Below, in pieces: positions 245 through 26,217 of a stretch of 64,000 nt of DNA (within the stretch, counting starts at the first letter, position 1; each line of letters opens with the position of its first letter). The position numbers and the translations under genes are program-made. The stretch is taken from assembly GCF_036588685.1 (NCBI RefSeq), contig NC_086375.1, positions 40,858,001-40,922,000 of the forward strand, read 5' to 3'. Below the pieces are notes generated by a model. That model was not told the DNA's origin, did not search any database, and saw only the letters and a program-made list of their open reading frames with translations. The stretch comes from Mytilus trossulus (taxonomy: Eukaryota).

Positions 245-562
245 GTGGCAGTTGTACAGATGCAACAGCATATTTTTATGACGAAAACATTAGTATATCA
301 TGTATAATTACTGGAATGTTGAATCCCATGTCAATTATTATTGCGAGAAACGGACAAAACATAGCAGCAATCAACGAAAACAGAGAAGTCCAATATATAT
401 CACCATCAACTAATTTTAGCATAGTTATTAAACAGGCTGAGAATATAACTTTATCGTTGTTGTTTGAAAATGTCACATGCGAAGATGATGGTCTATATGG
501 AGTGCATGTCAACAGTACAGCCTTTAAAGCGGTCAATATCACTGGATCTCTTATGATTATAG
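245..562 (+). CDS. Ig/chitin-binding modular protein, internal exon A (atypical Ig V/I-like domain 1); gene starts upstream of the window
   Basis: tttacag acceptor at 243-244 and G|gtaagg donor, phase 1-1. Translates GSCTDATAYFYDENISISC...LLFENVTCEDDGLYGV, an Ig-like DxGxY motif. Confidence 0.8.
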
Positions 563-951
563 GTAAGGAGGTAATTGTTGTAAAGTGTGTCACACAACAC
601 GTACGAAGTACTGTAAGTGGTAAAGATTGAATTTCATTTGTCAACTTCTTTTGGATGAAATCTTTAACTGGCAACTGATATTTGAATTTGTGGATTATCT
701 TTTATTTTGGAAAAAACTGAATACTATAGCTTAAACTTATAATACTTGCAAACATCACGTTGTTTCTGTCAGTCAGTTTTTGGATGTTTACGCCCTACAT
801 AGCAGTTTAATGATTCAAAATGTACGAGTGCTGCTAATTAAATGATATATTTGATTTTTACCATTAAAGAGCGTTAAAACCTATGTCTAGATAGTTCGGT
901 AATACGATTCATCAGTTGAAATAAAATTTGACTTCGTTTTTCTTTTTCCAG

Positions 952-1302
952 ATAGACCAACCGTTCCTGTATTCTTTGTAAATCCTGACCAGTTTGCCGG
1001 ACTACCATATAGACAATCTGACTATGAACATCAATGTTCTGGAAACATTGGACTACCAGCTGGAGATCTGATTATAGAAATGAAATTGAATAACTCAGAT
1101 TTTTCCTTAGTGCCGCCTGAAGTTCTGGTTATTGTACAAAATTCTAGTTATACACAAGGTTGTAGTAATTTTCAGATATTGAGATTTACTATGAATTTTA
1201 CATCAGCTATGAATAAAGCTGTTATAAGATGTCGTGTGCAAAACGACTTTATTTTTGGAGGAGCAATAATTGGATCAGAAGTGGATTTATCAACTTTCTC
1301 AA
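952..1302 (+). CDS. Ig/chitin-binding modular protein, exon B (Ig C-like domain 2)
   Basis: tttttccag acceptor and A|gtaag donor. DRPTVP...HQCSGNIGLPAGDL...NKAVIRCRVQN; homologous to exons 2470-2829 and 10448-10807. Confidence 0.8.
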
Positions 1303-1688
1303 GTAAGAAAATTTAATGTATGAACTCTTTATCGTTTCTAAAAAGGCTGAACAATTAGTGGAAACAGACTATGTGTGTCAGTTTTATGATTAAAATAGCA
1401 TTAGCCATAATTTAAAAATGAAAATACTAAAGATTTCTACAGATAAAAAGCAAACAAACAAGAAAATAGTGTCAATGGTATTAGCTCTTCAGTTACGGGT
1501 GCCTATATACCATTTAAAAATCAAAAAGGTATCTTTTTTGTTTGAATTTCGTTTGTTTTCTATGTTATACACGTCATGGGTATTAAAGTAAAAACTAAAC
1601 TCTTATTTCTGAGAAAAAAATTTGTTAAATTAGCAATTAAAAGTGTGTGTATTATATTGACGATATTTGGTGTTAATTGTTATTTCAG

Positions 1689-2009
1689 AAGATACATGTT
1701 ATGATGTTAATGTCCATATACATAACGCTGCAACGATGATGTGCACTTTAAACAGAACAAAAAAATATGAAGAGATCATGATTGTAAAAATCAAAGATGG
1801 TGTCAGCGTAAATATATCTAGGATTAGTAAAAATGGAGATATAACATACTTCCAAGATCATTTGAACATACAAATACGTGTTATTACGAGTTTCGTCGTT
1901 TCTATTGATTTTTTAAACACTACTTGTGCCGATGAAGGAGACTATGTGTTACAAATAAGTAATGGAACAAGAGTTACAGCCATGGTGACAGGATTATTAC
2001 AGCCAATCA
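1689..2009 (+). CDS. Ig/chitin-binding modular protein, exon C (atypical Ig V/I-like domain 3)
   Basis: tatttcag acceptor and A|gtgagt donor. DTCYDV...ATMMC...NTTCADEGDYVL. Confidence 0.8.
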
Positions 2010-2469
2010 GTGAGTCAGTTATTGTTTTGTTCCATGATCACATTAAATTCATTTAGAGATTTTCTAAAAAAAAGGCTTGTTCTTTTTATTTCATGGGATA
2101 AATGTACATGTAAAACAAACATATACTTCTAAAAAAGTATTTCAGGTGATGAATCTGAGTACTATTGATATGCTTTGGACAGTTGTCTATATATAAATTA
2201 CAGTAAGCTCTATCCAACCAAACTCTACTTCATAAATTTAACGTTTAAAAGTATTTTGACAGAGACCAAGATATCATCAACAACCTGCCATTAACACCTA
2301 ATTTCCAAAAATGTCATCACCACTACGAAATGAAAATGTATAAAATCTTAAGAGATTAACAAAGAAAATGTGAAATAAATCGTTGACATATTTGTTCGCA
2401 GTTTTCTTTAATTCTAGTAAGTCTTTCTAGATATGTATGTCATATAATATTAGAATTTATTTTTAACAG

Positions 2470-2829
2470 GTGATCCAGGGAAGCCTTCTTTATTCTTGAA
2501 TCCTGCTGTTGTTGTAGAATCTGGCTCTGATAATGAAGCTCATAATTGCTATGGCAATGTTGGATACCCTACGGGGGAACTTCGTATCGATATTTTAATA
2601 GATATTCCCGGAAAAGATGAAAAGCAGTTTTTCCAAATACCGGATGAAGTCGTCACTAGATTGAGTGACATTAGAACTAATCAGAATTGCCATGGATTCC
2701 AAAATATTACATTCCTACTAAATGTAGATAGTCAGCAAAATAATCAAACCTTAAGATGCAGAGTAGAAAACAAATATCAATCGGATGTGATTTCTTATAC
2801 AGATGGACATGTCGTAAGAGTTATCCCAA
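2470..2829 (+). CDS. Ig/chitin-binding modular protein, exon D (Ig C-like domain 4)
   Basis: ttttaacag acceptor and A|gtaagt donor. DPGKPSL...HNCYGNVGYPTGEL...NNQTLRCRVEN. Confidence 0.8.
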
Positions 2830-3371
2830 GTAAGTGTACAAGACTTAAAAAATAAGTAAAGGAACGTGAAGATATCAATGGCTACATTCTAATAAATTTA
2901 AAAGCGGACCTTGAAGGATAAAAATAAATATATATATATATTAGTTAGAGTTGCGTTGTTATGAGTGATTTAAAAAGTAAATTTTTGTAAATCTAAGAGT
3001 CGAGGAGAAATGCAAGCTTCCGCGAACTTTTACATTTTATGAGTTGAATAAGACAAAGATTATCCTTTTTTCAAAGTTCTCATGTTTTTACGAATGACCA
3101 GTAGCGACAAACAGTTGAGAAATTTCTCGTTTCATACTTGACACTTTTCATATCCAAGTTGACCTTGCATGTAGACTTGATTAAAATATTCCATATGTTG
3201 ACAATTTTGAATCAAAATACCAATACACTTGAATGTCTTAAGACGACGAAACAAGTACAATTAATAACAGGCAGAAAACAATATAAAAACCACGCCACTA
3301 TAGACGGCAATACAAAAAGAACAAAAAAATTAGCCTGGAAGGATAATAACATTAACGGTACCATTTTTTCT

Positions 3372-3414
3372 GCACCAGATGCGCATTTCGACAATACATG
3401 TCTCTTCAGTGATA
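3372..3414 (-). ncRNA. Minimal type I hammerhead ribozyme, family 2 (retrozyme/Penelope-type repeat fragment)
   Basis: Minus strand reads UUAUCA-CUGAAGA-GACA-UGUAU-UGUC-GAA-AU-GCGC-AU-C-UGGUGC: complete catalytic core, stem II, palindromic stem III and AUC cleavage triplet. Confidence 0.75.
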
Positions 3415-3660
3415 ACTGTACCCTGTATATCATTTGACATCCATATAATTGGCTCTGAATTGCTGATCTCCGCGAGCAGCTGATACTAAGAAAGTGGTAA
3501 ATAATTCAGAATAAAGAAAAAACTCAGAACATATATATTTATTAAAAGTTGCATGTGAGTAAAAACTCTTAATTTAATACGAGAAACTTGTCAATTCTAT
3601 ACTTGTATTTGGGAACATGGCATATCATTTACCTGTATCTTTAGAGTATAACTTTTGCAG

Positions 3661-3858
3661 AAGACATATGCAAGTGCAATACTATTCAGTCCGGTATACG
3701 TCGGGGACATCCTGGGCGATGTGATTACTATGTTGAATGTGTTAATATGACAGTTCCAGTAGGAAAACAATGCCAAGCAAACCAATGTAGAAACAGTTCG
3801 ACCGGAATCTGTTCCGATGACTGCTCTGAGAACGTATGCAACGAAACAGTTCCTGCAG
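3661..3858 (+). CDS. Ig/chitin-binding modular protein, exon E (Cys-rich chitin-binding type-2/CBM14-like module 1)
   Basis: ttttgcag acceptor and G|gtaac donor. DICKCNTIQSGIRRGHPGRCDYYVECVNMTVPVGKQCQANQCRNSSTGICSDDCSENVCNETVPA; homologous to 11508-11702. Not in the ORF track. Confidence 0.78.
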
Positions 3859-4582
3859 GTAACACACAAATTTCTTTAAAATAAAACTTATTGAAGAGAT
3901 ACGAACAAAGAATAAACTAAAATCTAATGTTGCCCATATTGATTTCATTGTATGACATATTAACCTATAGTTAATGGAACACCAACATCTTTTATAATGT
4001 ATGTGTGTCATAAGTATTCAATTAAGGAAGAAAGCGTATTTGTATTGAAATCCATGTAAATGATAGATACAATGTTTTTGAAAATCAATGTGCTCTATAA
4101 AGGATTAAACTATAACAAGGGTCGATTCCAAGATAGGTTGAATGTGGGTTTTTTTATTTAACGTGTTATTATATAAGATAAGGGGATGTGGTTTTATTGT
4201 CAATGACAGGACTATCCTAAAATACTATATGACTTGGATTTAGGAGAAGTACCACCATTATTTTCCCTGATATAATTTGTTGAATTGGCACTTTTCAACA
4301 AAAAGTGTACATAATCAGTGTGACTTGGATGGTTTTATTCTGCCCACATTGAAAATTTCACATAAAATTTCATTGCATATATACAATAATAACCATCACC
4401 GGAAGTAAATCAATCAAATTGTCACACTTTTTTTCTTTTAACATATACTATTGTAATCATGATGTCTAATGACGTTTCCAAACTACATGTATTGTATAGA
4501 AACACCAAATAACAAACGATTAATGCTTTTAAACTCCAGAAGTATCATTGAACTAGTATAAAGAAATAATGATGTGTTTTAG

Positions 4583-4648
4583 ATTTTTGTGGTGCTGTTT
4601 CCATTCCATCTATAAATATGACAAGTACTGTTGTTCCTAGTATTTCAC
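4583..4648 (+). CDS. Ig/chitin-binding modular protein, linker exon F
   Basis: gttttag acceptor and C|gtaagt donor, 66 nt, phase 1-1. DFCGAVSIPSINMTSTVVPSIS; begins with the same DFC as the last coding exon at 12548. Confidence 0.65.
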
Positions 4649-4701
4649 GTAAGTGTTCAATGTATCTCTGTACGTATTAGTTTACATGTGTTACTTTACT
4701 T

Positions 4702-4914
4702 GTACTGTGGATTCATTAATATTCGTTGGATACCAATTTTCATGGATTTCGTGGGTACAGGGGAACAACGAATTTAAATGTTCAACGAAGTACAAATTTT
4801 CTAAAGGAATGTATGTGAACTTTGAAAGAACCATGAATTTAAATATCCACGAATATGCAAGTTTTCCTCTATCCACGGAAATTGGTACCCACGAAAATAA
4901 ATGAATCCACAATA
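4702..4914. mobile_element. Short TIR element (MITE, TA-flanked, Tc1/mariner-like); related copy at ~35085-35302
   Basis: Terminal inverted tactgtggattcatt ... aatgaatccacaata, with internal inverted repeats. Confidence 0.6.
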
Positions 4915-5489
4915 TTTACTTTTTCATTCCATTTGTATGTGAAATTTTACAGTTATGTCAAAAGCTACACTGAAAGGAAATATATAATACATTCTGTAAA
5001 TGCATGCTTGTAATATATTTCTTCAAGGACCTATTTAGCTTATTGGAGATGTTTAATCAGATTCCGATTGTGCTATTATGTATGAAAGGAGGTATACTGG
5101 ATTGTACATCATGCTGTATAGCCAGTCAAGGTAGTTACATGTAAAAACTTCCATCCTCCATATAATTGTGCTCGATACTAAACCCAACAACCCCACAAAA
5201 TAACCATGAAATATATACATATGCAGTATACCCATCTCTTATTTATCCTGAGTTTAATTTACATCGTATTGACATGCATGAAAAATTTGCCATATAAGGT
5301 TAAACAACCAACAATCAATCAAATTTTGTTTTGCTGTTTTTATGCTTTTAATTGATTTAAATTTTACGCTTTCCAAAATATTGATAACGAGAATACATCA
5401 TACTTGATTGATTGGTCAGTTTTCCCTTTTGTCGCTTGCATCAACAAAAAAGGGTATATAAAGAGAGCGAAAAATTATTATGGGTAAAA

Positions 5490-5655
5490 CTTTTCGGAAT
5501 TTTGGTCTTCAATGCTCTTCAACTTCGTTCTTTATTTTGCCTTTTTAACTTTTAAATTTTTATAGATCCGAGCGTCACTGATGAGTCTTTTATAGACGAA
5601 ACGCGCGTATTGCGTATATACTAAATTTAGTCCTGGTATCTATGATGAATTTATT
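5490..5655 (+). mobile_element. Retrozyme-type repeat fragment with type I hammerhead (5572-5616)
   Basis: GCGTCA CTGATGA GTCT tttat AGAC GAA AC GCGC GT A TTGCGT. Flanks match the copies at 22841 and 27481. Confidence 0.7.
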
Positions 5656-6679
5656 TAATATAAGGTCAACACAAAACAATTTGTTTTTCTCAACAATCGT
5701 CATTTTTAGCATTAAATAAGTTTTTGATTATCTGCTTTCCTTCTACTTATTAACATTATGTTGTATGCAAACTGTTTTTACGAAACGCTTGTTATTTCTA
5801 AAGTATAGCGATTACTGTCTTTGAAAAAGACTCGTATAATACAAAACAAAACATACTGAACTTTTGTGTCCTTATAGATTTAGTTATGGGTTACATCATT
5901 TGCTTTCAAATACAGAAAGGTATATACATAATAAATATTGACAATCGTAACACTATATATTTAAATTATTGTTAAAGAAAGATTGCAACGATACTAACTA
6001 TTATAAATATCAACACGTTATAGTGTCAGCCTGAAAACATGACTTTTATTATGATTATTTTTAATTACATTTGTATTTAACATTGTTTTTGACACTTGCC
6101 CTATTAAATGTTACATTTATGAAGTGATACAGTTTTGTGTATGATTGAATAAATCGTTAGTCTTAACATTTCCTTTAACTCGTATATTTCTTTCAATTCT
6201 ATCTGTAAAATAGAGGAGAAAAAAAGATTAATTCAGAATCGTAAACGGAGGACAAACTACACCCTTGCAAAAAATAATTAAAAAAAACCACAGACAACAG
6301 TCTGCATATCAAAACATTGAAAACTAAAGACTGTGGAACATAAAACCCCACCACAACACGATTTGTCTTAGTAACTACGGATGGATTAGTAGAACCGAAT
6401 CCACATGTGACGTCCGTCGTGTTACTGGTATGAAATACATTGATGAGTTATGTCAAGGGATAAAGACAAGAGACGTGTCAATATTTTCACTAGGCTTGAT
6501 TTGAACTAATGAAGAATAAATTCCTTCGAGAGTTTTTATGTACCCTAGAATGTACGTGATTTTATTGTTGCCCAGAGCTAAACGGCGCGTTGTCCTTATA
6601 TCAAAAGGAATAAAATATTAAAGGAATTAAATAACTATTTTATATTTATTTTTTACCAAATTATGAGGAAAGATATATT

Positions 6680-7530
6680 TCTAATATCGTAGCTTTTTTA
6701 CCTAGATTGATTAAATTCTTAAATTTGACAGAAATATACCAAACTACATAACAACCTATGATTCAGTTAGATCAATATACTGCAAAGATAGTTGTAGAGT
6801 TTGATGAAAATCTAAGATGTTTTGAAAAAAGATATGAGAAAAATTGAAGTGTACTATCTCTATTTTGTCAAAACTTCAAATCCTAGCTTTTTTTAATTAG
6901 ATTAAAATATTTTTTAAATGTAACAGCGATACACCAAACTTCATAACAATCTGGGATTCAGTAAGATTAATACATCACCAAGGCAGCTATATAGTTTGAA
7001 AAAAAATAAGTTGATTGTGAAAAACTTTTATTAAACATAAATTAAAGTATACTATCTCTATTTTGTTCGAACTGCAAATTCTAGCTTTTTAGACCTAGAT
7101 TAATTGAAATTTTAAATTTGACAGCAATATAACAAAACAAAATGACCGGGGATTCAGTAAGCTTAATATATATCTAAGATAGCTGTATAGTTTGATGAAA
7201 ATCCAAGTTGTTTTGAAAAAGTTATTAAAAAAATAAAGTGTACTATCTCTTTTTTTTCTGAATTTCAAATCCTAGCTTTTTATTACCCAGATTACTTTAA
7301 TTCTTAAATTTTACAGCAATACAACAAATAACTAATTGACATGGGATTCAGGAAGCTTAATGTATATCTAAGATAGCTGCATAGTGTAATGAAAACCCAT
7401 GTTGATTTAAAAAAAGTTATTAAAAAAAAGTGTACTATCTCTATTTTGTCCAATTGCAAATCCTAGCTTTGTTTACCAAGATTTCTTTTTAAGTTGATTT
7501 GAAAAAGTTATAAAAACAACTTAAAGATGC
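6680..7530. repeat. Diverged tandem array, unit about 190-200 bp, about 4.5 copies; followed by a gtcgag-rich segment to ~7970
   Basis: Blocks ctagcttttt / gggattcagtaag / aaagtgtactatctc recur near 6690, 6883, 7081, 7272 and 7463. Confidence 0.75.
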
Positions 7531-8384
7531 CTATCTGAATTTATATAATATAATTTTTATTATTACCGATTGTAAAATTGTAAAATTAAATTCTTTCATT
7601 TCACACAAATAAATCAAACTGCCAAATAAGCTTGAATTTTGTAAGATCAATATTTAACTTAGTTAGATAGGCTGATTTACACCAGTCAAAACTGAATTTG
7701 AAGGTCAAGACTAGTCGAGACAGGTCGAGACTAGTCAAGACAGGTCGAGACATGTCGAGCCTTGGTCAAGACCATTTCAGACTACACAAAGATCATCAAG
7801 TACTGAATAATAAAGGTAACAGTAGTATACCGCTGTTCAAAACTGAATCAGACTAATTAAGTAAAGTCGAGAACTATTCGAGTACACTGAAGTGCAGTTA
7901 AGTACAGTCGAGACAATGTCGAGACGGGTCGAGTAAAATGTGTGCTCAATTTTTCTGGTCGAGCACAAAAACTGGTCAATGCAGACTCTGTGCAGTTTGT
8001 AGTGTTATAATGCTTGATATTTTCCCGTCGCAAGAAATCGTGTTGGAATGTCCGTCTACAAGGTCAGCGTAAATATTTTAAATATTAAGTTAAAAACAAT
8101 GGAGAATAGTATTTTTTTCGTGAGATTTGCTGGCATTACCCATAGTTTGTGGCACTCAAACTTAATTCTCAAAAGATCATGGACATAGAAACATAAGATA
8201 AAGCAAAATAACTTCTCCTGCCGTATCATTTTCTTCTTTTCCGATGGTAATAAACTAATAGCATAGAGGCATCCTTTTCCTTTTAGTTTTGTCAAAATTA
8301 AGTTTCGAAGATCACCTCACCTATAGCATAAAACCCGCAATCAGATATTGTATGCTGCTTTTTCCGATAAGCATTGCTATATAC

Positions 8385-8557
8385 NNNNNNNNNNNNNNNN
8401 NNNNNNNNNNNNNNNNNNNNNNNNNNNNNNNNNNNNNNNNNNNNNNNNNNNNNNNNNNNNNNNNNNNNNNNNNNNNNNNNNNNNNNNNNNNNNNNNNNNN
8501 NNNNNNNNNNNNNNNNNNNNNNNNNNNNNNNNNNNNNNNNNNNNNNNNNNNNNNNNN
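8385..8557. other. Assembly gap (173 N)
   Basis: Run of n. Confidence 1.
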
Positions 8558-8729
8558 CGATTTGGAGGTTTTGAAAAACCTTTTTCTTAGTATAGCCTAA
8601 GATCCTAAGATATAAAATAAACTTTAAAATGTTGGTGGAATATAATAGTAATCGGACTAAAACTAGCATACCAAATTTTGAAGCAATGTGACATTTAAAT
8701 GCTTCATACATTTTCAACTTATTTTACAG

Positions 8730-9053
8730 CTATAGTGTGCACGAATACGTCGATTTTCTTGAATACTGGTCCCGCAACAATACTGTGCTTTTTGAATGAA
8801 ATAAGTTTCAATTCAATAACTATAAATAAGGGTTCTCGGACTGAGGGAACAAAAACGATAGGATTCATCAGCAGTGATGGTTCTGTCAACATGCTGCCAG
8901 TAGAGGAACTATTCAACATGACAATAAACTTTGACGGAAGCAAACTAACTATTACCCTGATATTAGCGACTTGTGATTCAGAGGGACTTTACTCAGTTGT
9001 CGTTAATACCAATGAACAAATATATACTGCACATGGAAACGTAACAATATTAC
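8730..9053 (+). CDS. Ig/chitin-binding modular protein, exon G (atypical Ig V/I-like domain 5)
   Basis: attttacag acceptor and C|gtaag donor. IVCTNT...ATILC...LATCDSEGLYSV. Confidence 0.78.
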
Positions 9054-10447
9054 GTAAGATATTTAGTTTAATAATATGAATATGTTATTGCAGTTTGTAA
9101 ACTGTCAGTGGGGAGGGTAAAGAAAGAAAGAAAGAAAGTACGAAAACCAATGTTCTAATTTATGATAAAACAGAACACAATAACAAAACGACAGACAGAA
9201 ATCAATTGCAGTTTCCTGACTTGAGAGATGAACATACAGAATGTATCGGGATTGACCATGTCCGTAAGCACTTGAACCACCCTTTATTCTGGAATAAAGG
9301 TATACTAGTACACACACACAAAAAACAGTTAAATTCACTCGGAAAGGTCTTTTAAAAGCAACGGCAAAATATCATTTCTCTTGAACAATAACGAAAAATA
9401 CATAAAAATCTCAAAACTTGAGAATTGAAATGGGGAATGTTTCAAAGAGACAACAACCCGACCAAAGAGCAGACAATAGTTGTAAGCCACCAATGCCACG
9501 ATTCGAAGGTTGAGAACAGCATTTTAACATTATCATGAAATATTGACATTATTACAAAGGCATGTGAAATAATAATACATCACATGTAAATATAAATTTA
9601 GTTATTAGTATCTGTATTTGTCCATTCGTTTTTGATACGTTTTGTTATTTGATTTTGCCATGTGATTATGGAGTTTCCGAATTGATTTTCCTCTAGGTTC
9701 AGTATTTCTGTTATTTTACTTTTTAGATGTAAATATATTACTAGTATGGTGATGTTTGACAGACGCGGATAAATAGATCCTTATTGTGTGTTATCATAAT
9801 TAAAAAGATTGCACACACTACATTGCAAATTCGGGAAATTATGACCCGTTTTTATCGATAATTTTGTCGTGTTAAGACAACTTGAAACTTTTTTGTTAAA
9901 ACAATTTGTACTTTTTGAAAACTTGACTTTTTGTTTATCTTAATAATCGACACAGAGTGTCTTACATAAGAGTAGGTAACATGTCGAAAATTATATATTT
10001 CGCAGTAAAATGTATGTAATCTGAAAATAATCTGTTTTGCTCAGCTAATTTTTGTTTTCAGGATATTACCATTTTTTCAAGATTAGGATCTTAATAACTT
10101 TTGGAAACATTTTCACAATGGTACATATTTTGTGTAACCAACTCGTCTCCTCGAGAGATATCGATATAGATCATTGAATCAGTACAGCGAAATTACAAAT
10201 GCTTTGAAATTTACATACTATCATAACATAAAGTTTCTCTTATTGTTTTTAATTTGATTCAAGACTACTAGTCATGGTTTAGGAATCATTCTGTTCTTTT
10301 CATTTTTTCATAATATGAGGTCAATCTTATTCAATTTATGGGTTTTGAATAAATTAGTTATGATTAGTACTAATTAATTTATACACTATCATAATTATGT
10401 CCAGGAGGTATTATCTGCTCTGAATAATTCGTCTTGGTTTTAAACAG

Positions 10448-10807
10448 GCAAACCATCAATTCCAAATTTAGAAATGAACAAAGATCAGGTGATAAATCTT
10501 GGATATTACAGACCCGGATTTGAACACGTATGCAGTGGTGACGTTGGGGAACCTCCCGGGAATCTAATTTTAGAAATACAACACACTGACTCGACTTTTT
10601 TCGAACCGTTACAAGATCAATTCATTAAAATCATATTTACAAATATTGAACGAGAACATTGCTATAACAATACAATGACAGTCGTCTTTGGCATGCTGTT
10701 TTATTCTGAAATGATCAATGGTAAAATACGATGTCGAGTGGACAATTCCGTTTCTTTGGGAACCAATGAAATTTTTGCAGATACAGAAGATTTACAACTT
10801 ATTCCAG
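10448..10807 (+). CDS. Ig/chitin-binding modular protein, exon H (Ig C-like domain 6)
   Basis: tttaaacag acceptor and G|gtttga donor. KPSIP...HVCSGDVGEPPGNL...NGKIRCRVDN. Confidence 0.78.
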
Positions 10808-11507
10808 GTTTGATTCTGGCTAATCTTGTTTTAAGCCCCCATGCACTGAAAGGGTATAAAACATATCACATTAAGTATACACAAAAACAAAACAAAATTC
10901 TAAATATGTTAAGAAAACACACAATTACCAAGAGAGTAAAAGCCAAATAGTTGGCAAAACATTGAAAAAAACCAACTAACTCTTTTACGTTATGAACCCT
11001 GCTAAAATTTATGTGAACTAAATCGCTCATTTTGCAAGCTGTCTCTCATGGATAAACAAGTTATTGATTTTATAATTCGTTTGATATTCAGTGAAACTGG
11101 CTAAAGTTATGCTACATCTTTAATACATGTTTATGTACGTGTTTTGGGGTTTTTTCTTCAGTTAAACGAACCAATAAATCAATAACAGTTCAAATGGAAA
11201 TAATGATACATAAATAAACTTTACGATTTTTTTTATCAAAGATGTTGGTTCTAGGTAGTAATCTAAAAACAAATTTAGGGTAAAACAAATGATCACCAAA
11301 CCAGACTTATAGAAGTATCACATGTTTTTACAGGTTCACATGACGATTAGTTCATTATTAACTGTTGATAATTACTTTTTATATTTTGGTTTGAAATCAA
11401 GGACTTCTAGTCCAACATTAATGACCTATTTAGCAATAGTCATTTATAAGCAAAACAATCATCACAATTTTTCTTTAATTTTTATTTTCTGAATGTTATT
11501 TTTACAG

Positions 11508-11702
11508 AAGAAATTTGCAATTGCAATACTGATGATGGTGCAAAAAGGGGACACCCAACAGTTTGTGACGTTTTTGTGCAGTGTACTAATTTCACAGTAC
11601 CTCAAGGGTTACCATGTCCTTCTCTAAACTGTAGAAATAGTATAACGGGTGAATGTGGAACGGACTGCTCTGTGAAAACATGCAGTGAGCCAGTCCCAAA
11701 AG
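11508..11702 (+). CDS. Ig/chitin-binding modular protein, exon I (chitin-binding type-2-like module 2)
   Basis: tttttacag acceptor and G|gtaat donor. EICNCNTDDGAKRGHPTVCDVFVQCTNFTVPQGLPCPSLNCRNSITGECGTDCSVKTCSEPVPK. Confidence 0.78.
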
Positions 11703-12547
11703 GTAATACTATCCTTAATAGACACAATCTTTTAAAATAATAGTTACGAAAGCGACAGGGCTGACTTCCACTAACTGTATCTCTATCATTTGAAATGAGT
11801 CTCAATTTTACCTAAAAACATAGTTTAACACCAAAATGTGAGTAATTTAAGATTCTTTTAGTATAAGGGATTATTTCTAAACAGATAACCAACTTACTGA
11901 CGCCTGTCGATATACCAAAATAGCAATTCTCGCAGACTTTGACTTATCCCCCAGAAGAATATAGGGACATATTTAAGCCAAACGAACATTTCTGTATAAA
12001 TAAAAAGCTTATTTAAAACATTATGATTTGAATAAAATGGATATATGACAAAGTCTCTTCAATATTCAGTCTTCAATATTTAGATATTGACTCTGTGATA
12101 AAATGAAGATAAAGGGTTTTGTTCTTACATCCTTATGTCTCTGGTATTAAGAATCAATTTATTCACTTCTTTTCTAGTTCTCTGGTGATTAAGAGTTGGA
12201 CATGTTCAAAAACACATGTTTTGTTTTAATTGAAGATTAGATATTGACCTACATGTACATATGTTGTTTTTAAGTTTTGTGTGTCACTTGAATATTGTCT
12301 CATCTACGTACGTTTATCCAGTACTTTCTTATGTCATGCTTACAATTCATAATTTATACGTCCGGTATTAAAAACAGGCGGCGTTTCAACAATGTGTAAT
12401 ACAACTATGAAAAGACTATTCATTATTATTCACCAACAGCAACCTTTCAAAAGTTCAAACAAAAAACTCAAACGTTATGTAAAGCAAAAAAACGCAAGAC
12501 AATGAAAACCAAAAGGTATCATTAAAATATTCGATTTTTTCTTTTAG

Positions 12548-12561
12548 ATTTTTGTCAATAG
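12548..12561 (+). CDS. Ig/chitin-binding modular protein, last coding exon (DFCQ-stop)
   Basis: cttttag acceptor followed by at ttt tgt caa tag, matching the DFC start of exon 4583. Probable 3' UTR continues to a donor at 12606 and an exon from 13530 with AATAAA signals near 13806-13874. Confidence 0.55.
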
Positions 12562-16183: not shown

Positions 16184-18754
16184 ATGGACACAAAGCTGAA
16201 AGACGTTCATTCCGGGCATAAAGGAGCAATTACAAGACTTTGGAAGAACTTTGGTGAGATACGAGACCTTTCCGAAATAGAAATTGAGGACGTCACAGCT
16301 ATTTTAGATTCCGTGTTACAGAAAAGGGATATTCTTAAAGATCTGAATGATAAAATTGTGGAAGCAAGCTCGGATGAAGACGTGGTGGATAAAATTCAAC
16401 AAACAGATGAGTACATGTTTGATTTAGATTCAAAAATTCGTCAAATTAGAAAACTCATTAATCCCTCCCAATCGAAAAGTCAAAATTTACCCGTCAATAC
16501 TACAGTTTTTCAAGCTAGTCACGTTACTCCCTCTGATACACCCATGCATACCTTGATTTCGCCTACAGCAAATAGTGTACCCGCAAGCGACTCCTCTCAA
16601 TTGAACCCGCACGCCAATTGTTTCACGTCAACATCTCATGTACAATCGAATGCAGCCTCGTTTTATACAAGTAACCCCGCTATATCAGAGATTATTCCTG
16701 CTACGAACGCGTCTATGCATATTCCAAGTTTACATTCGTCTTCTAGCACAAATAATCAGTACCACAAATTACCAAAGTTGAACTTGCCTACGTTTAAAGG
16801 GAATATTTTAGATTGGCAATCCTTTTGGGATTCTTATGAGACATCTATACACACAAATCCAACGCTCAGCGACGCACAGAAGTTTAACTACTTTAAGTCA
16901 CTACTACAGGGAGAAGCGTTTCAGACCATATCAGGTTTTTCGATGAAAAACACTAACTACGGCAAAGCTATTTCGTTGTTACAAGAGAGGTATGGACAGA
17001 TACATACTATAATACAAACATACATGCAAGCTCTACTTGAGATTTCGCCGCCGATTTATACTTTAGTAAGCCTCCGCAATTATTATGACAAAACTGAAAC
17101 TTACGTACGAGGTCTAGAGTCACTCGGACAGACTACAGACACTTATAGTTCACTACTGGTACCCATTATTCTGAACAAGTTGCCCGCAGAAATACGCCAA
17201 AACCTAGCAAGACAACACGGACCGTCAAGTTGGAATTTGAAAGATTTAAGGAAGAGTATACTGAACGAAATTCAAATCATGGAGGCAGGACAAAATGCAG
17301 GTACTTATCTTGATTCTATAGACCACCAGTTTGCAAACTCATCTATAAGCACGTTTCACACAGGAAATAATTCACCACAAGGAAACACAACACACAACGC
17401 GAAGAAAAGCCAGCCCCGGAATATTAAGGAGAGACCATGTGTTTTTTGTAAAGACATACATCCACCAACATACTGTACCAAGGTTAGTGATCATAAAGCC
17501 CGCATAGCTATAGTCAAACGAGACAATTTGTGCTTAAATTGTTTAGGAAATCATCATGCTAATGAGTGTAAATCTAAAAGAACGTGTAGACACTGTGACA
17601 AGAGACATCATTCCAGCTTATGTAATGTAAGTAACCATGGTAACAGGGAAACTGCAAACAACCCAGATATACAGAATAATCAAAGTCAGAATCAATCTAC
17701 ATCTGTAAGTCTCATCAATACTACGGAAAACAAGGAAGATACGCACATTTTACATTCATCGACAAAGATGCGCACAACTGTGCTATTGAAGACGGATGTA
17801 GCTCCTGTATGGTCAGGTAGTATATGTACGGATACGAATATTTTATTTGATGAAGGTGCACAAAGATCTTTTTTAACAGATGATCTAGCGAAAACATTGA
17901 ATTTGAAAACTGAAGGAGTTGAAGTTGTACACTTATCGGCATTTGGAAAGGAAAACACCAGCACGAGAGAACTACGTAAATCCACCGTGCACATTGAAAC
18001 AGGAAATAGACGTAAATTTCCAATTAAAGTTCTAATTGTACCTACAATAGCAGTCCCACTTCAGAATCACATGCGCAACGTTAACCGAGATATGAACTAT
18101 CTAAAAGGATTGAGACTTGCTCATCCAGTTACCAAAGAAGATTCTTTTGAAATTTCTTTACTTATTGGTGCCGACTATTATTGGGATTTTATTGAAGACG
18201 AGATTATACGAGGAGATGGACCGACCGCGGTAAGATCAAAGCTTGGGTATTTGCTATCAGGACCCTTACAGTCAGGTATAGCACGTTCGTCTACGACAGC
18301 TGGCATCTTTAACTTACTAGTTTCGCACAAATCAGAAGAATTTAATTTGGAAGCGTTCTGGAAACTTGAATCGATAGGCATAGATTCATCCGAAAATCAA
18401 GAGAAAGAGACAAATTATTTGAAAGACTATCAGGAGTCATCAATTGAATTTCTAGGAGATAGGTATTCGGCGAAATTGCCATGGAAACAAGATTACGAAG
18501 AATTACCGTCAAATTATGATGTTGCAAAAAGGAGAACGGCGAATGTTATCAGAAGAATAGGCAAAGATGCGACCATGTTAAAGAAATACGGAGATATTAT
18601 AAAGGAACAGGAACGTCGCGGATTTATTGTGAGGGTTGATGAATTAGAACCAACAATTAACAAGGTACATTATATACCACACCATGCCGTTGTTAAGAAA
18701 GATTCCAGTACAACACCAATACGTATGCTTATCCAAGATCTTGGTAAGATTTAG
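16184..18754 (+). CDS. BEL/Pao Gag-protease and RT N-terminus (first part of a broken polyprotein)
   Basis: LPKLNLPTFKGNILDWQSFWD gag motif; CVFC..H....C, CLNCLGNHHANEC and CRHCDKRHHSSLC knuckles; ILFDEGAQRSF aspartic protease; YIPHHAV...TTPIR RT start. Confidence 0.9.
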   Translation: MDTKLKDVHSGHKGAITRLWKNFGEIRDLSEIEIEDVTAILDSVLQKRDILKDLNDKIVEASSDEDVVDKIQQTDEYMFDLDSKIRQIRKLINPSQSKSQNLPVNTTVFQASHVTPSDTPMHTLISPTANSVPASDSSQLNPHANCFTSTSHVQSNAASFYTSNPAISEIIPATNASMHIPSLHSSSSTNNQYHKLPKLNLPTFKGNILDWQSFWDSYETSIHTNPTLSDAQKFNYFKSLLQGEAFQTISGFSMKNTNYGKAISLLQERYGQIHTIIQTYMQALLEISPPIYTLVSLRNYYDKTETYVRGLESLGQTTDTYSSLLVPIILNKLPAEIRQNLARQHGPSSWNLKDLRKSILNEIQIMEAGQNAGTYLDSIDHQFANSSISTFHTGNNSPQGNTTHNAKKSQPRNIKERPCVFCKDIHPPTYCTKVSDHKARIAIVKRDNLCLNCLGNHHANECKSKRTCRHCDKRHHSSLCNVSNHGNRETANNPDIQNNQSQNQSTSVSLINTTENKEDTHILHSSTKMRTTVLLKTDVAPVWSGSICTDTNILFDEGAQRSFLTDDLAKTLNLKTEGVEVVHLSAFGKENTSTRELRKSTVHIETGNRRKFPIKVLIVPTIAVPLQNHMRNVNRDMNYLKGLRLAHPVTKEDSFEISLLIGADYYWDFIEDEIIRGDGPTAVRSKLGYLLSGPLQSGIARSSTTAGIFNLLVSHKSEEFNLEAFWKLESIGIDSSENQEKETNYLKDYQESSIEFLGDRYSAKLPWKQDYEELPSNYDVAKRRTANVIRRIGKDATMLKKYGDIIKEQERRGFIVRVDELEPTINKVHYIPHHAVVKKDSSTTPIRMLIQDLGKI

Positions 18755-21677
18755 ACTTCATCGTTATGCTATCACTACCGATATTGAGAAGGCTTTTTTA
18801 CATGTACATGATGTAGGACTCAACAAAGACGACCGAGATGTAACACGATTTCTATGGTTAAGTAACCCTTCAGACGTAACCAGTCCGTTAATGACGTATA
18901 GATTTAAAGTGGTACTATTTGGAGCAACTTGCTCACCATTTATCTTGAGCACTACTCTGTTAAAACATTTACAGCAAACCAACAGTAATACCGCAAGAAT
19001 GCTTGAACGTGATTTATATGTGGATAACATTTTGACTAGCATTGACAGAGAGAGTGTCACTTTAAACTTCTTTGAGCAAGCAAGGGAAATGATGAGTAAG
19101 GCAGGATTTAATTTGAGGTCTTGGAATTCGAACAGCATAAAGGTACGACAACAAGCAGTATCTCAGAAAGTTTTAGACACGGACACAGACACGAAAGTAT
19201 TGGGAATGAGATGGAATAGTCACACAGATTATATTTTCTATCCACACAAATGCAAGGAAGAAAGTACGACAAAACTTGTAACTAAACGAGAAATATTGAG
19301 ATATTCGTCAGGAATTTACGATCTGCTAGGATTACTGAGTCCAGTGACAATAACGGCTAAAATTTTGTTGCAAGAAATATGGAAACTTGGATTACAATGG
19401 GACAGTATAATAGAGGGAGACCTATGTAACCAATGGATCGGTATACGCGAGAATATTGAGACCGCTACACAAACAGTATTTCCTCGATATTATTTCGCTG
19501 AGACTACAGGATCAACACAACACAGTCTTCACATATTTGTTGACGCAAGTACAAAGGCATATGGTGCGGTAGGATATATATGCAATGGACAAGAGACAGC
19601 ACTTGTAATGGCAAAGTCACGAGTAGCTCCGTTAAAGGAACTGACACTCCCACAACTTGAGTTAATTGCAGCCGTAATCGGAGCACGCTTAGCTAAACAC
19701 CTTCAATCAACGTTGGAGTGCGAAAACATCACATTTTGGTCGGATAGTCAGATTGTTTTACACTGGCTTAAGTCAACAAAGACATTAAAACGTTTCATAC
19801 AAAATCGTGCGAATGAAATAAACGAATTGACAAAATCATGGGAATGGAAGTATTGCCCTACAAGCGATAACCCAGCTGATCTAGTAACACGAGGGATAAC
19901 AGCCGAACAATACACAAACAGCACATTATGGATTAAAGGTCCGCATTGGTTAACAGACAGTTCAACATACCCAAAATCAACATTAATCGACACGTCTTTA
20001 TCAGTTTTGTTAACAGAAAATGAAAGTACATGTAATAGCCAACCAAAGGACGATTCGATTTGTAAATTTGGAATTAACTTTATTATTGATATTGAACGTT
20101 ATTCGTCGTACCAGAAACTGTTACGTATCACGTCATATGTACTACGATTTATAGAAAACTGTAGAATTGAAAGGAGTTTAAGGACACTAGAACATTTAAA
20201 ACCAAGTGAATTATCCAAATCTGTTGAGTTATGGGTTCGAAATTGTCAGGAAACGGCTTTTGCTACGGAATATAACGCATTGAAGTTTAACAGTAAATCA
20301 CGGGACAGTTTACCGAGAATCAGACAATTAAGATTATTTCTTGACGACAAGAACATCCTCAGATGTGGAGGAAGAATCCAGAATGCACCCTTATCGGAGT
20401 CCACCAAATTTCCGTTTATCTTACCTAACGATCATACAATTTTTAAACTTATTGTATTAGATGCCCATGAAAGAATTTGTCATTCTGGAGTAAATGCCAC
20501 AATCGTACATTTGAGACAAAGTTTTTGGATATCCGCAATCCGACAGTTTGTTCGTAAAACACCTAGGAAATGTGTTACTTGTAGAAAGGTTGTTGGACAA
20601 CCATATGCAGCACCGGATCCACTGCCATTGCCTAAAATTCGACTACAAGAAGCTGGTCCTTTTACAGCTACAGGGATAGATTTCACAGGCGCATTACAAG
20701 TTAAAGATAACGAAAATGTCATAAAGAAAGTCTACATATGTTTATTCACTTGTGCCTCTACTAGAGCGATACACCTTGAAGTCGTTACAAATTTGTCAGA
20801 AGAAACATTTTTACAAGCTTTTCGGCGCTTTTCAAGCAGAAAATCTTTACCAAAAGTAGTTATGTCAGACAATGGTTCTACTTTTGTATCCGCGTCAGAA
20901 GACATCAAACAACTTTGTAATTCAAAAAAGTTAAAAGAGACATTATCAGCCCAAGGAATCGACTGGTTTTTCATCCCTAAACGTGCTCTATGGTTTGGTG
21001 GATGGTGGGGGCGTCTTATTGGAATGACGAAAACGAATTTGAAAAAAGTACTAGGAAAATCACTTGTAAATTTAGAGACTCTTCAGACAATCGTTACAGA
21101 GATAGAATCCGTCTTAAATGATCGACCCTTAACATATGTGTCTTCAGACCCGGAGGATCTTCAACCACTTACACCAGCTCATCTTCTTTATGGACGTAGG
21201 ATAAATACATTACCGTACATGGATACTCGTGAAATTGACATGTTTAATGAGACATTTATGAACAAAACAAAGTTTATCAAACGTGTTCAAAGACAATCAT
21301 TACTCTTACAACAATTCTGGAACAGATGGAAAACAGAGTATTTGACGTCATTGCGTGAATTCCACAAGAAAACGGGAAACAATTCCACTATAATCAGAAT
21401 AGGCGATGTAGTTCAGATTCATGATGAAAACAGAAGAATAATGTGGAAAACCGGGCTAGTGGAAAACCTAACCAAAGGAAATGATGGACTAGTTCGTTCC
21501 GCTATTATTCGAACCAAAACGGGAACCACATCACGTCTGATCGTCAAGTTGTATCCCCTTGAACTTTGTACAGACATCGAAACATCAAAGGACGAAGAAG
21601 CTCGACAGAAGAAAGAACCAAGTGCGACCACAAGCCGGATGTTGCCAAACCGAGAAGCAGCCAGAAGAGCCAGGTAA
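18727..21677 (+). pseudogene. BEL/Pao pol (RT, RNase H, integrase), frameshifted from gag by a deletion, integrase catalytic Glu lost
   Basis: DIEKAFL, FGATCSPF, YVDN; LHIFVDAS and WSDSQ RNase H; H..H..C..C zinc finger; GIDFTG, SDNG, and WWGRL where WWERL is expected. Confidence 0.88.
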
Positions 21678-23960: not shown

Positions 23961-24201
23961 ACCAGACATTTGCATCAAATAAAACATTTTCATATGAATA
24001 ATTTTAATCACAACTTTTTTCAACGTCTTATATCCAAAGATTTTTAAAGTACCCTTTACCTTGAATTCTTTAAACAGCGTTATGACAATGAGTTGTTGCA
24101 ATCAATTATTCAACAGTAATCACGGCAAGAGAAAAGCTAAAATTGCTTATACATTACTCATATATGTGTTTCAATTCTATCATTAATGCTTGTCGTTTCA
24201 G

Positions 24202-25293
24202 ATGCACTTCCAGATCTTAATTCATTAGATTTATTCAAAGACCATCCTATGGATATTGGATCATTAATACCTGAAAGCTTATTAAGAGATTCATCCTTAC
24301 CTTCATCATTAATGGGACGTGACATTCCAACACTGTCGCCACTAACAGGACGTGACATTCAAACACTGTCGCCACTTACGGGACGTGACATTCAAACACT
24401 GTCGCCACTAATGGGAAATGACATTCAAACACCGTCGCCACTACTAGGACGTGACATTCAAACAAGTAATGTAGCCACAACAGAAACAGTGAAATCTGTT
24501 CCGCTTTCTGCAACAAAGCCAGCTACTAAAGCTTTTTTCAGTATGAGAAATGCTGAGATTGGACAGCCCACACAAGTTCAAGCCAACACAACTAAAATAA
24601 CCGTGTCTCCATTTCCGGCAACAGTGGCTCCCTTTCCAGAAACAGTGCCGCCATTTAAAGCGACAGAAATCGTTAAAACTATACTAACATCTGTAGCTAC
24701 GCCACCAGTCAAGTCTTCAATCATTTCAGAGACAATGGTGTATAAGACAAAATTAAAACCCAGCTCATCCGATTTTAATGGGAGAGTTGTTCATGAATTC
24801 CTACCTCAAAATATATGGCGTGACATGAAAACACAATCTAATTCGTTATCAAATGACTTTAAAGATGGTTTTAATGTAGCAGGTTCTTCAATTTTAGTAT
24901 CTGATGTTTTCAAACAGCCTTGGAACCGACCAAATTTAAACGGAGGCTCTTTCATTCTACAAAAAAGAATAAATAAATTAAAACAAAAGAAGAAAATTAG
25001 AAAACAGATTATCAAAAACAAGCAGCCATCGATAGAGCAATTAACAAATATTTTAAAGCGGGAAAACACGCTTCTGAATATAGCACTTGGATTAATCAGT
25101 AAAGACAAGTCTTATTTAAAAGATTCATTATTTAGTAAAAACAAATGTCCGTATAAACCACATTCTCTCAATAAAAAGTTCTTTATGGAGAAGGTAAAGG
25201 ATAATGGATGGATTAAACGGAGGTGTGCCCTTGGAACAGCATATGACCAAGATACATGTGAATGCTCAATCAATATTGGATATCAACCTGAAG
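24202..25293 (+). CDS. Pif/LamG3-like protein, exon 2 (11-aa repeats, Thr/Pro-rich and Lys-rich regions, divergent ChtBD2)
   Basis: tttcag acceptor and G|gtaagt donor, 1092 nt. C-terminal CPYKPH...RRCALGTAYDQDTCEC is the Pif-type chitin-binding motif. Confidence 0.85.
24315..24464 (+). repeat. Coding minisatellite, 33-bp unit (GRDIQTLSPLT), about 4.5 copies
   Basis: ggacgtgacattcaaacactgtcgccacta-like units start at 24315, 24348, 24381, 24414 and 24447. Confidence 0.9.
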
Positions 25294-26217
25294 GTAAGTG
25301 TCGAAATCATTCCAAAATAAAAGGGTTAACAAAGTCACCATATTATACGCTTGCTTAGGAATAAAAGATTATAAAATTGAGAATGGAAAATGGGAATGTG
25401 CCAGAGACAACAACCCGACCATAGAGCAGACAATAGCTGAAGGCCATCAATATATCTTCAATGCAAAGATCAAAACCAACACCCGGAGAAGCCTATCAGT
25501 TCGCCCCTAAACAAATATCTATACTACAGTCATAATGGACGTAGACTAAACTCCGAATTAAAGACACGAAACTAAAATTAGAAATCATACAAACTAACAA
25601 AGGTCAGAGGCTCCTGAATAGGAACAGGCGTAAGAATGCGGCAGGGTGAAACATGTTTTTAGAGATCTCAACCCTCGCCCTATACCTCTAGCCAATGTAG
25701 ATGAAAACAAATGCACAACAATACGCATAGTTAAACTCAGTTTAAGAGAAACGAAGTTCGACGACTTTTATAGCTGACAATGCGGCATGGGCATCTCACC
25801 TTGTTGTAGGCTGTATAGTGGTCTAAGGCTGTCAATTTCTGTGTCATTTGGTCTCTTGTAGAGAGTTGTCTCTTTTGGCAATCATACTCTTTCTGCATTT
25901 ATAGATGAGATTTATTCTATTTACAAATATGCATTCATATACTTCTGAACTAGAAGACTGACACTTGCGCGACCATAGAACTTACATGCTGGCAACTATA
26001 TGTCACCGAATTCTATTTGAGCTCAGTTGAAAACAAAAATAATCTTGAAGGCAAATGGTTCATAACTATTTAAGTATTGTAACATATATATCGTATCTTC
26101 GATTATTCAACTATGGAATACCCTTGAAGCTAAGACACAACTTAGAGACATTGTCAACTCATTTGTTATTAATCTTGATGTGAGATCTTTCAATCATTAT
26201 AGATTTTCTTTTTTAAG

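Follow-up and report, generated by a model that had tools for sequence, protein, structure and literature searches.

A Mytilus gene joining V-like and C2-like Ig domains with divergent CBM14 modules probably codes for a type II, mucin-stalked surface protein

Ten exons at positions 245-12561

The window analyzed here is a stretch of 64,000 nt from contig NC_086375.1 of Mytilus trossulus (positions 40,858,001 to 40,922,000); its own numbering is used throughout, except where a genome coordinate or an upstream locus (L002, L003) is given. Positions 245-12561 contain ten exons (E1 to E10), all on the + strand, coding for immunoglobulin (Ig) V-like and C2-like domains and for two Cys-rich modules. 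The original prediction, made from the sequence alone, had suggested here a modular protein, possibly analogous to the secreted VCBPs of amphioxus and Ciona. The ten exons proved to be real, but the region is probably only half of a gene with twelve more exons upstream.

The first four exons form two pairs of Ig-like domains, with a V-like exon preceding a C2-like exon in each, and are delimited by appropriate splice sites. E1 (245-562; 318 nt, phase 1-1) is V-like and 86 % identical to residues 667-771 of XP_052103565.1 from M. californianus; E2 (952-1302; 351 nt) is C2-like and 80-83 % identical to its counterparts in the two orthologues described below. E3 (1689-2009; 321 nt, V-like) and E4 (2470-2829; 360 nt, C2-like) show identities of 75-76 % and 78 %, respectively, to the same orthologues. 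These are followed by E5 (3661-3858; 198 nt), which codes for a divergent CBM14 (peritrophin-A type) module with nine Cys and is 98.5 % identical to M. californianus, and by E6 (4583-4648; 66 nt), a Ser/Thr/Pro linker opening with D-F-C, with acceptor ttttag and donor gtaagt. A third V-like exon, E7 (8730-9053; 324 nt), precedes the C2-like E8 (10448-10807; 360 nt), 87 % identical to the orthologues, and E9 (11508-11702; 195 nt), a second divergent CBM14 module with nine Cys, which is 89 % identical to the orthologues and 54 % identical to E5. The terminal micro-exon E10 (12548-12561) codes for (D)FCQ and a TAG stop codon ending at 12561, so that E9 lies four residues before the C terminus. 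The assembly contains a gap of 173 N (8385-8557), located entirely within intron 6 (4649-8729) and not touching any exon.

All ten exons have an AG acceptor, E1 to E9 have a GT donor, and each of these nine has a length multiple of 3 and phase 1 at both ends. Together with one base from the preceding exon, E1 to E10 make 835 codons, containing 24 N-x-S/T sequons and no hydrophobic segment. The domain order is V, C, V, C, Cys module, linker, V, C, Cys module and DFCQ, and is the same in both orthologues. These results confirm the foreseen architecture of one domain or linker per phase-1 exon, including the length of ca. 835 residues, the internal exons in multiples of 3, the abundance of sequons and the terminal DFCQ.

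The two smallest exons were the most difficult to place. A tblastx search for E6, comparing introns 5 and 6 with 220 kb of upstream sequence, returned only repeats, and a strict scan for splice sites also overlooked this exon, which was revealed by residues 1182-1204 of XP_052103565.1. For E10 we used the top-scoring acceptor downstream of E9, although the sequence by itself leaves many short options; position 12548 was taken as its start because the orthologue ends in DFCK and because of the Cys count. The C-terminus of XP_052103565.1 (...PVPQ-DFCK) parallels the DFCQ of the window gene, and DFC likewise starts the linker exons of paralogues, so E10 looks like a truncated linker exon that has retained its Cys. 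The exon of a Cys module contains nine Cys and the following exon always begins with D-F-C, which brings the count to ten; a predicted pairing of this tenth Cys offers a possible reason for the conservation of a last exon of four codons. All searches in this work were done exon by exon, and not with one joined protein.

Transcripts bridge the assembly gap

Two contig runs (X1 and X16) and two raw RNA runs (X21 and X24) were aligned to positions 3101-9100. A 971 nt contig from X16 (contig 9) matches 3662-3856, within E5, and 8730-9058, comprising E7, with 68 contig letters between both matches; this spacer has the length of the final 2 nt of E5 together with the whole of E6 (66 nt). The match of one X1 contig starts exactly at 3661 despite 502 further letters upstream, and that of another (8890-9054) ends at 9054 with 49 letters remaining. 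The contigs break off at splice sites, without running into the introns, which indicates that they derive from spliced forms. Likewise, because the X16 contig carries E5 and E7 with the spacing expected for E6, the mRNA is continuous and in frame over the gap. Ig exons are thus joined to Cys exons in transcripts, as had been predicted. Exon skipping was not seen in the single contig spanning E5 and E7, which has room for exactly E6. The support for splicing at the level of reads covers E5-E6-E7; that for E1 to E4, E8 to E10 and the upstream exons comes from orthologue models and conservation.

Positions 3301-3500, 4701-4900, 5501-5700 and 7701-7900 are intronic repeats that showed very deep coverage of both strands in all four runs, against little or none on the exons; this coverage reflects repeat families expressed at other sites in the genome. 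Reads from X21 and X24 stacked only on intronic repeats.

Orthologues point to an upstream half of the gene

A profile search with the C-like exon identified an orthologue in M. californianus, XP_052103565.1 (LOC127737073, 1500 aa; P0002); another, from M. coruscus, CAC5391878.1 (1871 aa; P0155), is a member of the same 90 % cluster. Exons E1 to E9 are collinear with residues 667-1496 of XP_052103565.1, and E1 to E10 span its residues 667-1500; both orthologues show the same exon order and linker, and the RefSeq model has the DFC(K/Q) end. The M. coruscus model runs past the E9 donor into the intron and does not use the micro-exon. Identity to the two orthologues was 73-86 % for the V-like exons E1, E3 and E7, 78-87 % for the C-like exons E2, E4 and E8, and 89-98.5 % for the Cys modules E5 and E9; hence divergence between species is greatest in the V-like exons and smallest in the CBM14 modules. 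The anticipated failure of automated annotation to capture this architecture did not hold, since it is already annotated in RefSeq and GenBank models from sister species. Nevertheless, these models bear the name 'uncharacterized' or automatic fusion names; the gene is orthologous to annotated, but not to characterized, proteins.

Both orthologues extend at least 666 residues ahead of the equivalent of E1. Using them as tblastn queries (loci L003 and L002), we found twelve exons upstream, reaching 13,089 bases before the first base of the window, all open and with 65-96 % identity to CAC5391878.1 and XP_052103565.1. A tblastn comparison of the Ig and Cys exons with 20 kb of upstream sequence gave no match, because the upstream exons encode other types of domain. 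The ATG exon (L003:6911-7561), situated 13 kb upstream of the window, codes for a hydrophilic stretch of 217 residues, and the next exon encodes WKKK-LVYGLLFVGVAILAVILIVIAVS-TSSNNDD, with a hydrophobic anchor of 23 residues after KKK. The upstream exons do not code for an N-terminal signal peptide, and the hydrophilic tail amounts to ca. 245 residues. The absence of a signal peptide and the positive charges preceding a single hydrophobic segment lead us to predict a type II topology with a cytoplasmic N terminus; following the positive-inside rule, the protein from the SEA domain onward would be extracellular. Consequently, the earlier proposal of a secreted protein lacking a transmembrane segment is valid for the half encoded within the window, but not for the gene as a whole. 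The predicted cytoplasmic tail contains the Tyr motifs DDYEIV and NYTID, which could be sorting or signalling sites.

After the anchor there are SEA-like exons, whose phase-2 junction reads LALN-SGSIKVSF, and a stalk exon of ca. 240 codons, including ca. 200 Ser/Thr-rich residues. SEA domains can self-cleave at a G/SVVV site, and the G-S-I-K-V of the window gene resembles this motif. With the Pfam profile SEA (PF01390, threshold 26.4 bits), the orthologue CAC5391878.1 scored 25.9 bits, and the paralogues P0001 and P0033 scored 40.4 and 65.9 bits, respectively. The stalk is followed by seven single-exon TSP1 repeats, the last of which ends 351 bases upstream of the first base of the window. Six of them were scanned and matched TSP_1 (PF00090) with 38.7-55.3 bits, for a threshold of 21.6, and the seventh (L002:7601-7774), with 91-96 % identity to the orthologues, was placed only by tblastn; XP_052103565.1 and CAC5391878.1 contain seven TSP1 stretches each. 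Through its phase-1 donor, the last TSP1 exon connects with E1 to give NCPG-GSCTDATAY, a reading shared by the two orthologues. The M. coruscus model and the conservation of the upstream exons suggest that these probably belong to the same mRNA as E1.

The Cys-rich exons code for divergent CBM14 modules

The Cys of E5 are at positions 5, 20, 26, 37, 50 and 59, with the spacing C-x14-C-x5-C-x10-C-x12-C-x8-C, and there are three additional Cys (3, 42 and 54). This fits the six-Cys pattern of peritrophin-A, approximately C-x15-C-x5-C-x9-C-x12-C-x5-9-C (PMC10619976). Six of ten paralogous modules matched CBM_14 at E<=1 (best value, 0.0019). An AlphaFold (AF2) model produced from an alignment including E9 (A1) had a predicted local distance difference test score (pLDDT) of 86.2, and Foldseek ranks 1-13 with this model were all CBM14 structures, among them Aplysia EHEP, Avr4, Der p 23, CHIT1, tachycitin and Blo t 12, each with E>=0.035, as expected for 65 residues. 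The original prediction of a CBM14 fold is therefore supported by the model. With VIA-align, nine CBM14 entries (Z 5.6 to 3.4; 46-60 residues aligned) preceded any other match from the PDB, with Z values of 5.6, 5.6, 5.5, 4.9, 4.6 and 4.3 for Avr4, EHEP (two entries), PfAvr4, CHIT1 and Der p 23. A sequence search of the PDB with the Cys-module profile gave only matches with E>1, including one to Aplysia EHEP.

The modules of E5 and E9, those of their orthologues and five related ones share a conserved C-R-(N/D)-S-x-(T/S)-G motif, and are designated here CRNS-type. Comparison of this set with the other modules of the family using hhalign gave a probability of 97.0 % (E=1.2e-10); the second set includes residues 209-267 of P0018, which match CBM_14 with 32.7 bits. 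The modeled fold, the Cys spacing and the profile-profile match indicate that E5 and E9 are divergent CBM14 modules. Avr4 (6BN0), CHIT1 (5HBF), tachycitin (1DQC), Der p 23 (4ZCE) and EHEP (8IN3) share with E5 and E9 the fold and the Cys spacing, whereas the latter differ in the three extra Cys, in the Arg of the CRNS motif, which occupies the place of a Phe, and in their Pfam scores below threshold. That these modules are the most conserved part of the protein between species argues that their ligand matters.

V-like and C2-like Ig domains

V-like and C2-like exons alternate (E1/E2, E3/E4 and E7/E8) and there is no V-V tandem among them. In Pfam scans, E1 matched Ig_3 (E=0.002) and V-set (E=0.04), E3 matched V-set (E=0.049), E4 matched C2-set_2 (E=0.018) and E7 matched V-set (E=0.0045); the V-like exons of the window reached 14-18 bits on V-set (PF07686), with a gathering score of 26. 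The stretch equivalent to E7 passed the V-set threshold in XP_052103565.1 (29.8 bits) and in CAC5391878.1 (33.7 bits). Additionally, the profile matches of E7 in the PDB were Ig V domains, such as that of CD200, and its neighbours according to a protein language model were V-set clusters. The V-like domains keep the B-strand Cys and the D-x-G-x-Y motif but, unlike canonical V domains, lack the Cys of Y-x-C and the C-strand Trp; they also have an extra Cys at the N terminus, and another Cys is placed two residues ahead of D-x-G-x-Y. This placement of Cys suggests an unusual disulfide map, possibly including a V-C interdomain bond. Every V-like (E1, E3, E7) and C-like (E2, E4, E8) exon contains exactly three Cys.

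The AF2 model of the C-like exon (pLDDT 87.4) has six strands, and its best Foldseek matches were SYG-1 D1-D2, Lutheran, RAGE VC1 and CD166 (E=1.9e-4 to 1e-3; template modelling score 0.67-0.76). Cys28 and Cys95 are invariant in the alignment of the C-like domain family. These results indicate that the C2-like exons code for Ig beta-sandwich domains with a predicted B-F disulfide. In RAGE VC1, CD166/ALCAM, Lutheran/BCAM and SYG-1, the C-like model superposes on the second domain of a V-C pair, and the order of V followed by C is the same as in the window gene, although sequence identity to these adhesion receptors is only 9-14 %.

A tandem cluster of molluscan paralogues

Searches of the genome yielded 42 matches to the C-like exon and 18 to the Cys module, all of them on the contig of the window, between 40.05 and 40.87 Mb, and the window gene is the last, 3′-most member of this tandem cluster of ca. 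820 kb. In the 220 kb of the cluster that were examined, C-like exons alternate with Cys exons on the + strand; the remaining distal two thirds are known by match coordinates only. This region includes three near-identical segmental copies of ca. 52.3 kb (at 40716510, 40768854 and 40821120) with the same run of C-like and Cys exons. A C-like exon at 40695335-40695664 contains an in-frame TGA and is open in its two segmental duplicates, so that it is probably undergoing decay. A tandem satellite (period, ca. 355 bp) is located at 40658.3-40662.7 kb, and a fragment of it occurs in intron 6 of the window gene (5491-5618).

The possibility that the window gene is itself a decaying or mis-assembled copy, with the N gap hiding a break and without a functional protein, is largely refuted and appears very improbable. 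It would agree with the gap in the locus, with the C-like exon or exons (at least one) carrying an in-frame stop in the neighbouring cluster, and with the two RNA runs lacking reads on the exons. Nevertheless, all of the ca. 22 exons are open and have consensus splice sites, conservation with two other species reaches 98 %, and spliced contigs from two runs were found, with the gap bridged.

A C-like profile made from 12 paralogous exons (alignment A2) and scored against 1.84 billion representative proteins retrieved 167 relatives at E<=0.001. We looked up 20 of these: three were nameless and the 17 named records were all molluscan, from Mytilus, Pecten, Ylistrum, Argopecten, Mercenaria, Mactra, Mya, Tegillarca, Sinanodonta, Potamilus and the limpet Patella, with uncharacterized, hypothetical or automatic names in every case. 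At the N terminus of the paralogues P0003, P0005 and P0011, a hydrophilic tail is followed by an anchor and by a Ser/Thr stalk. P0006 has 867 residues on a Logan contig of 3168 letters, necessarily intron-free, and contains in one frame V-C-CBM14-linker twice followed by V-C-CBM14.

Paralogues from the cluster, such as XP_076098972.1 from M. galloprovincialis and CAC5391884.1 from M. coruscus, share the tail, the anchor, the stalk, the C2-like Ig domains and the CBM14-type modules with the window gene, as well as the DFC-opening exons, the phase 1 exons and the chromosomal cluster; the window gene thus bears the marks of the family (C2-like exon, DFC-opening exon, phase 1 exons and location in the cluster). 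P0003 and P0005 have ca. 600 residues, no Pfam match to TSP_1 or SEA, and a terminal, canonical CBM14 domain scoring above the Pfam threshold. In comparison, the window gene adds the SEA domain, the seven TSP1 repeats and the V-like exons, and its module is of the CRNS-type.

Other features of the window

Downstream of the gene, positions 16184-21677 (+ strand) contain two long, overlapping open reading frames (ORFs; 856 and 997 aa) similar to gag and pol of long terminal repeat retrotransposons, with CCHC knuckles and sequences resembling reverse transcriptase, RNase H and integrase. Their local G+C content is 0.37-0.39, versus ca. 0.31 in the surroundings. An ORF of 390 aa at 24186-25358 (+ strand) has tandem repeats of the type GRDIQTLSPL and a Cys-containing C-terminal stretch, and another of 360 aa at 46521-47603 (+ strand) contains the motif DGNCFFRAIS, which we presume to be reminiscent of OTU-type cysteine proteases.

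A predicted membrane-bound binding protein

We conclude, with a probability of roughly 0.75, that positions 245-12561 represent the 3′ half (10 of ca. 22 exons and 835 of ca. 1,800 codons) of an intact and expressed gene, coding for a type II, mucin-stalked surface protein with a binding head. From N to C terminus, the predicted protein would consist of a cytoplasmic tail, a transmembrane anchor, a SEA-like domain, a mucin-like stalk and seven TSP1 repeats, followed by two pairs of V-like and C2-like domains, a CBM14-type module, a Ser/Thr linker, a third V-like and C2-like pair, a second CBM14-type module and DFCQ. We propose a glycoprotein at the cell surface that may be shed through its SEA domain, and whose stiff, O-glycosylated stalk would present a multivalent binding head. 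Its anchor and SEA domain recall the layout next to the membrane in type II surface proteins, and TSP1 repeats and V-C pairs commonly act in ligand binding and adhesion. The TSP1 repeats and the Ig pairs may bind protein or glycan ligands, and the two CBM14-type modules may dock to a polymer, such as chitin, another glycan or a polyphenol, and this docking would link the cell surface with a matrix or a foreign surface. Each of the domains is of a known type, but the combination of a type II anchor, SEA, stalk, TSP1, V-C pairs and CBM14-type modules is undescribed in the literature searched, where we found no described mollusc family with Ig and CBM14 domains, VCBP-like or with SEA and ChtBD2 domains.

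Several observations weigh against this interpretation. In X21 and X24, which carry one species label, depth on E5 to E7 was zero in the 6-18 % of each run that was read; expression was thus low or tissue-restricted in the sampled material, which is not proof of silence. No read joins the upstream exons to E1, and the M. californianus RefSeq model starts within the SEA region, without the tail and anchor exons, and could represent a shorter isoform or an incomplete model. The Ig exons of the window are all below the Pfam threshold; E5 reached 12.9 bits with CBM_14 (PF01607; profile positions 5-53 of 53; threshold 22.1) and E9 alone had no Pfam match. Lastly, E5 and E9 carry Arg at the position following the fourth Cys, where CBM14 has a conserved Phe, and chitin is not bound by EHEP or Der p 23, two proteins with the CBM14 fold (PMC10619976).

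The latter points bear on a tentative alternative, to which we assign clearly less than even odds: that the CRNS-type modules are not chitin binders, but bind another ligand (glycan, polyphenol or protein) or act as rigid, disulfide-rich spacers. This would be consistent with the presence of the same Arg in the orthologues of E5 and E9 and in the five related modules, with the conservation of the CRNS motif itself, with the three extra Cys per module plus that of DFC, and with the fact that the closest solved structure, Aplysia EHEP, binds phlorotannin and not chitin (PMC10619976). However, the residues contacting chitin vary even among proven chitin binders (PMC10619976), so that the loss of one aromatic residue decides nothing, and other modules of the family retain the Phe and pass the Pfam threshold. 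Chitin is best regarded as one candidate ligand of the CRNS-type modules.

The likeness to VCBPs, on which the original prediction was based, was borne out in part. VCBPs from amphioxus and Ciona are secreted proteins with the structure V-V-CBD (PMC2632668, PMC4757023), that is, small proteins in which a tandem of two V domains precedes one chitin-binding domain (CBD). In common with them, the window gene joins Ig V-type domains and a C-terminal CBM14-type domain in one extracellular protein, a combination that also occurs in its orthologues and paralogues, and it belongs to a multigene family; that of the VCBPs is also polymorphic. Conversely, the window protein has ca. 1,800 residues, a predicted type II anchor, SEA, a stalk, seven TSP1 repeats, three V-C pairs instead of a V-V tandem, and two CBM14-type modules. 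Although no direct comparison with VCBPs was made, none appeared among the relatives that were looked up, all the named ones being molluscan. Lacking a V-V tandem and having a predicted anchor, the window protein does not qualify as a VCBP, and the resemblance appears to be in layout only.

A secreted, VCBP-like opsonin, whose V-like domains would bind bacteria and whose CBM14 modules would bind chitinous mucus, is possible only through an alternative start or through release at the SEA domain, and we consider it improbable. A soluble form would agree with the joining of V-like and CBM14-type modules in RNA, with the motif of the SEA domain that resembles a self-cleavage site, with the contrast between V-like exons that vary most between species (73-86 %) and CBM14 modules that vary least (89-98 %), with the tandem expansion of the family, and with the lack of an anchor in the RefSeq model from M. 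californianus. Nevertheless, we did not find an exon for a signal peptide beside E1, whose acceptor is in phase with the seventh TSP1 exon here and in the two orthologues; besides, the order of the domains is V-C and not V-V, and the exons for anchor and tail show both conservation and open frames.

For the predicted membrane-bound protein, recognition or adhesion at a surface facing the environment is the most likely role. A serious, if unlikely, rival is that of a structural organiser of the matrix, an epithelial mucin (from mantle, gill or gut) whose CBM14 modules would tether cells to an extracellular layer containing chitin, such as the shell organic matrix, the periostracum or the gut lining, with the TSP1 and Ig domains as matrix-binding spacers. 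TSP1, SEA, mucin stalk and CBM14 are typical parts of matrix proteins and mucins, the C-like domain resembles the adhesion molecules SYG-1, Lutheran, RAGE and CD166, and CBM14-containing proteins recur in bivalve shell proteomes (PMC4517812). However, the family is not named in the shell-proteome literature searched, and tandem expansion with fast evolution of the V-like domains suits recognition better than a fixed structure.

Implications for molluscan Ig-lectin systems

A broader scenario, which we regard as rather unlikely, is that molluscs independently built tandem membrane receptors from fast-evolving V-like and CBM14-type modules, as a convergent, cell-bound counterpart of the VCBPs. 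The window gene would then be derived within the family, having acquired SEA and seven TSP1 repeats, and would serve as a sheddable sensor or opsonin for chitin- or glycan-coated microbes at mucosal surfaces. If the modules do bind chitin or microbial glycans, this family would constitute a cell-bound, multigene Ig-lectin system in bivalves, beside FREPs and VCBPs, and would bear on the repeated recruitment of Ig domains to carbohydrate recognition. If, on the contrary, the protein organises a chitin matrix, it would be a candidate link between epithelial cells and the matrix of the shell or the gut.

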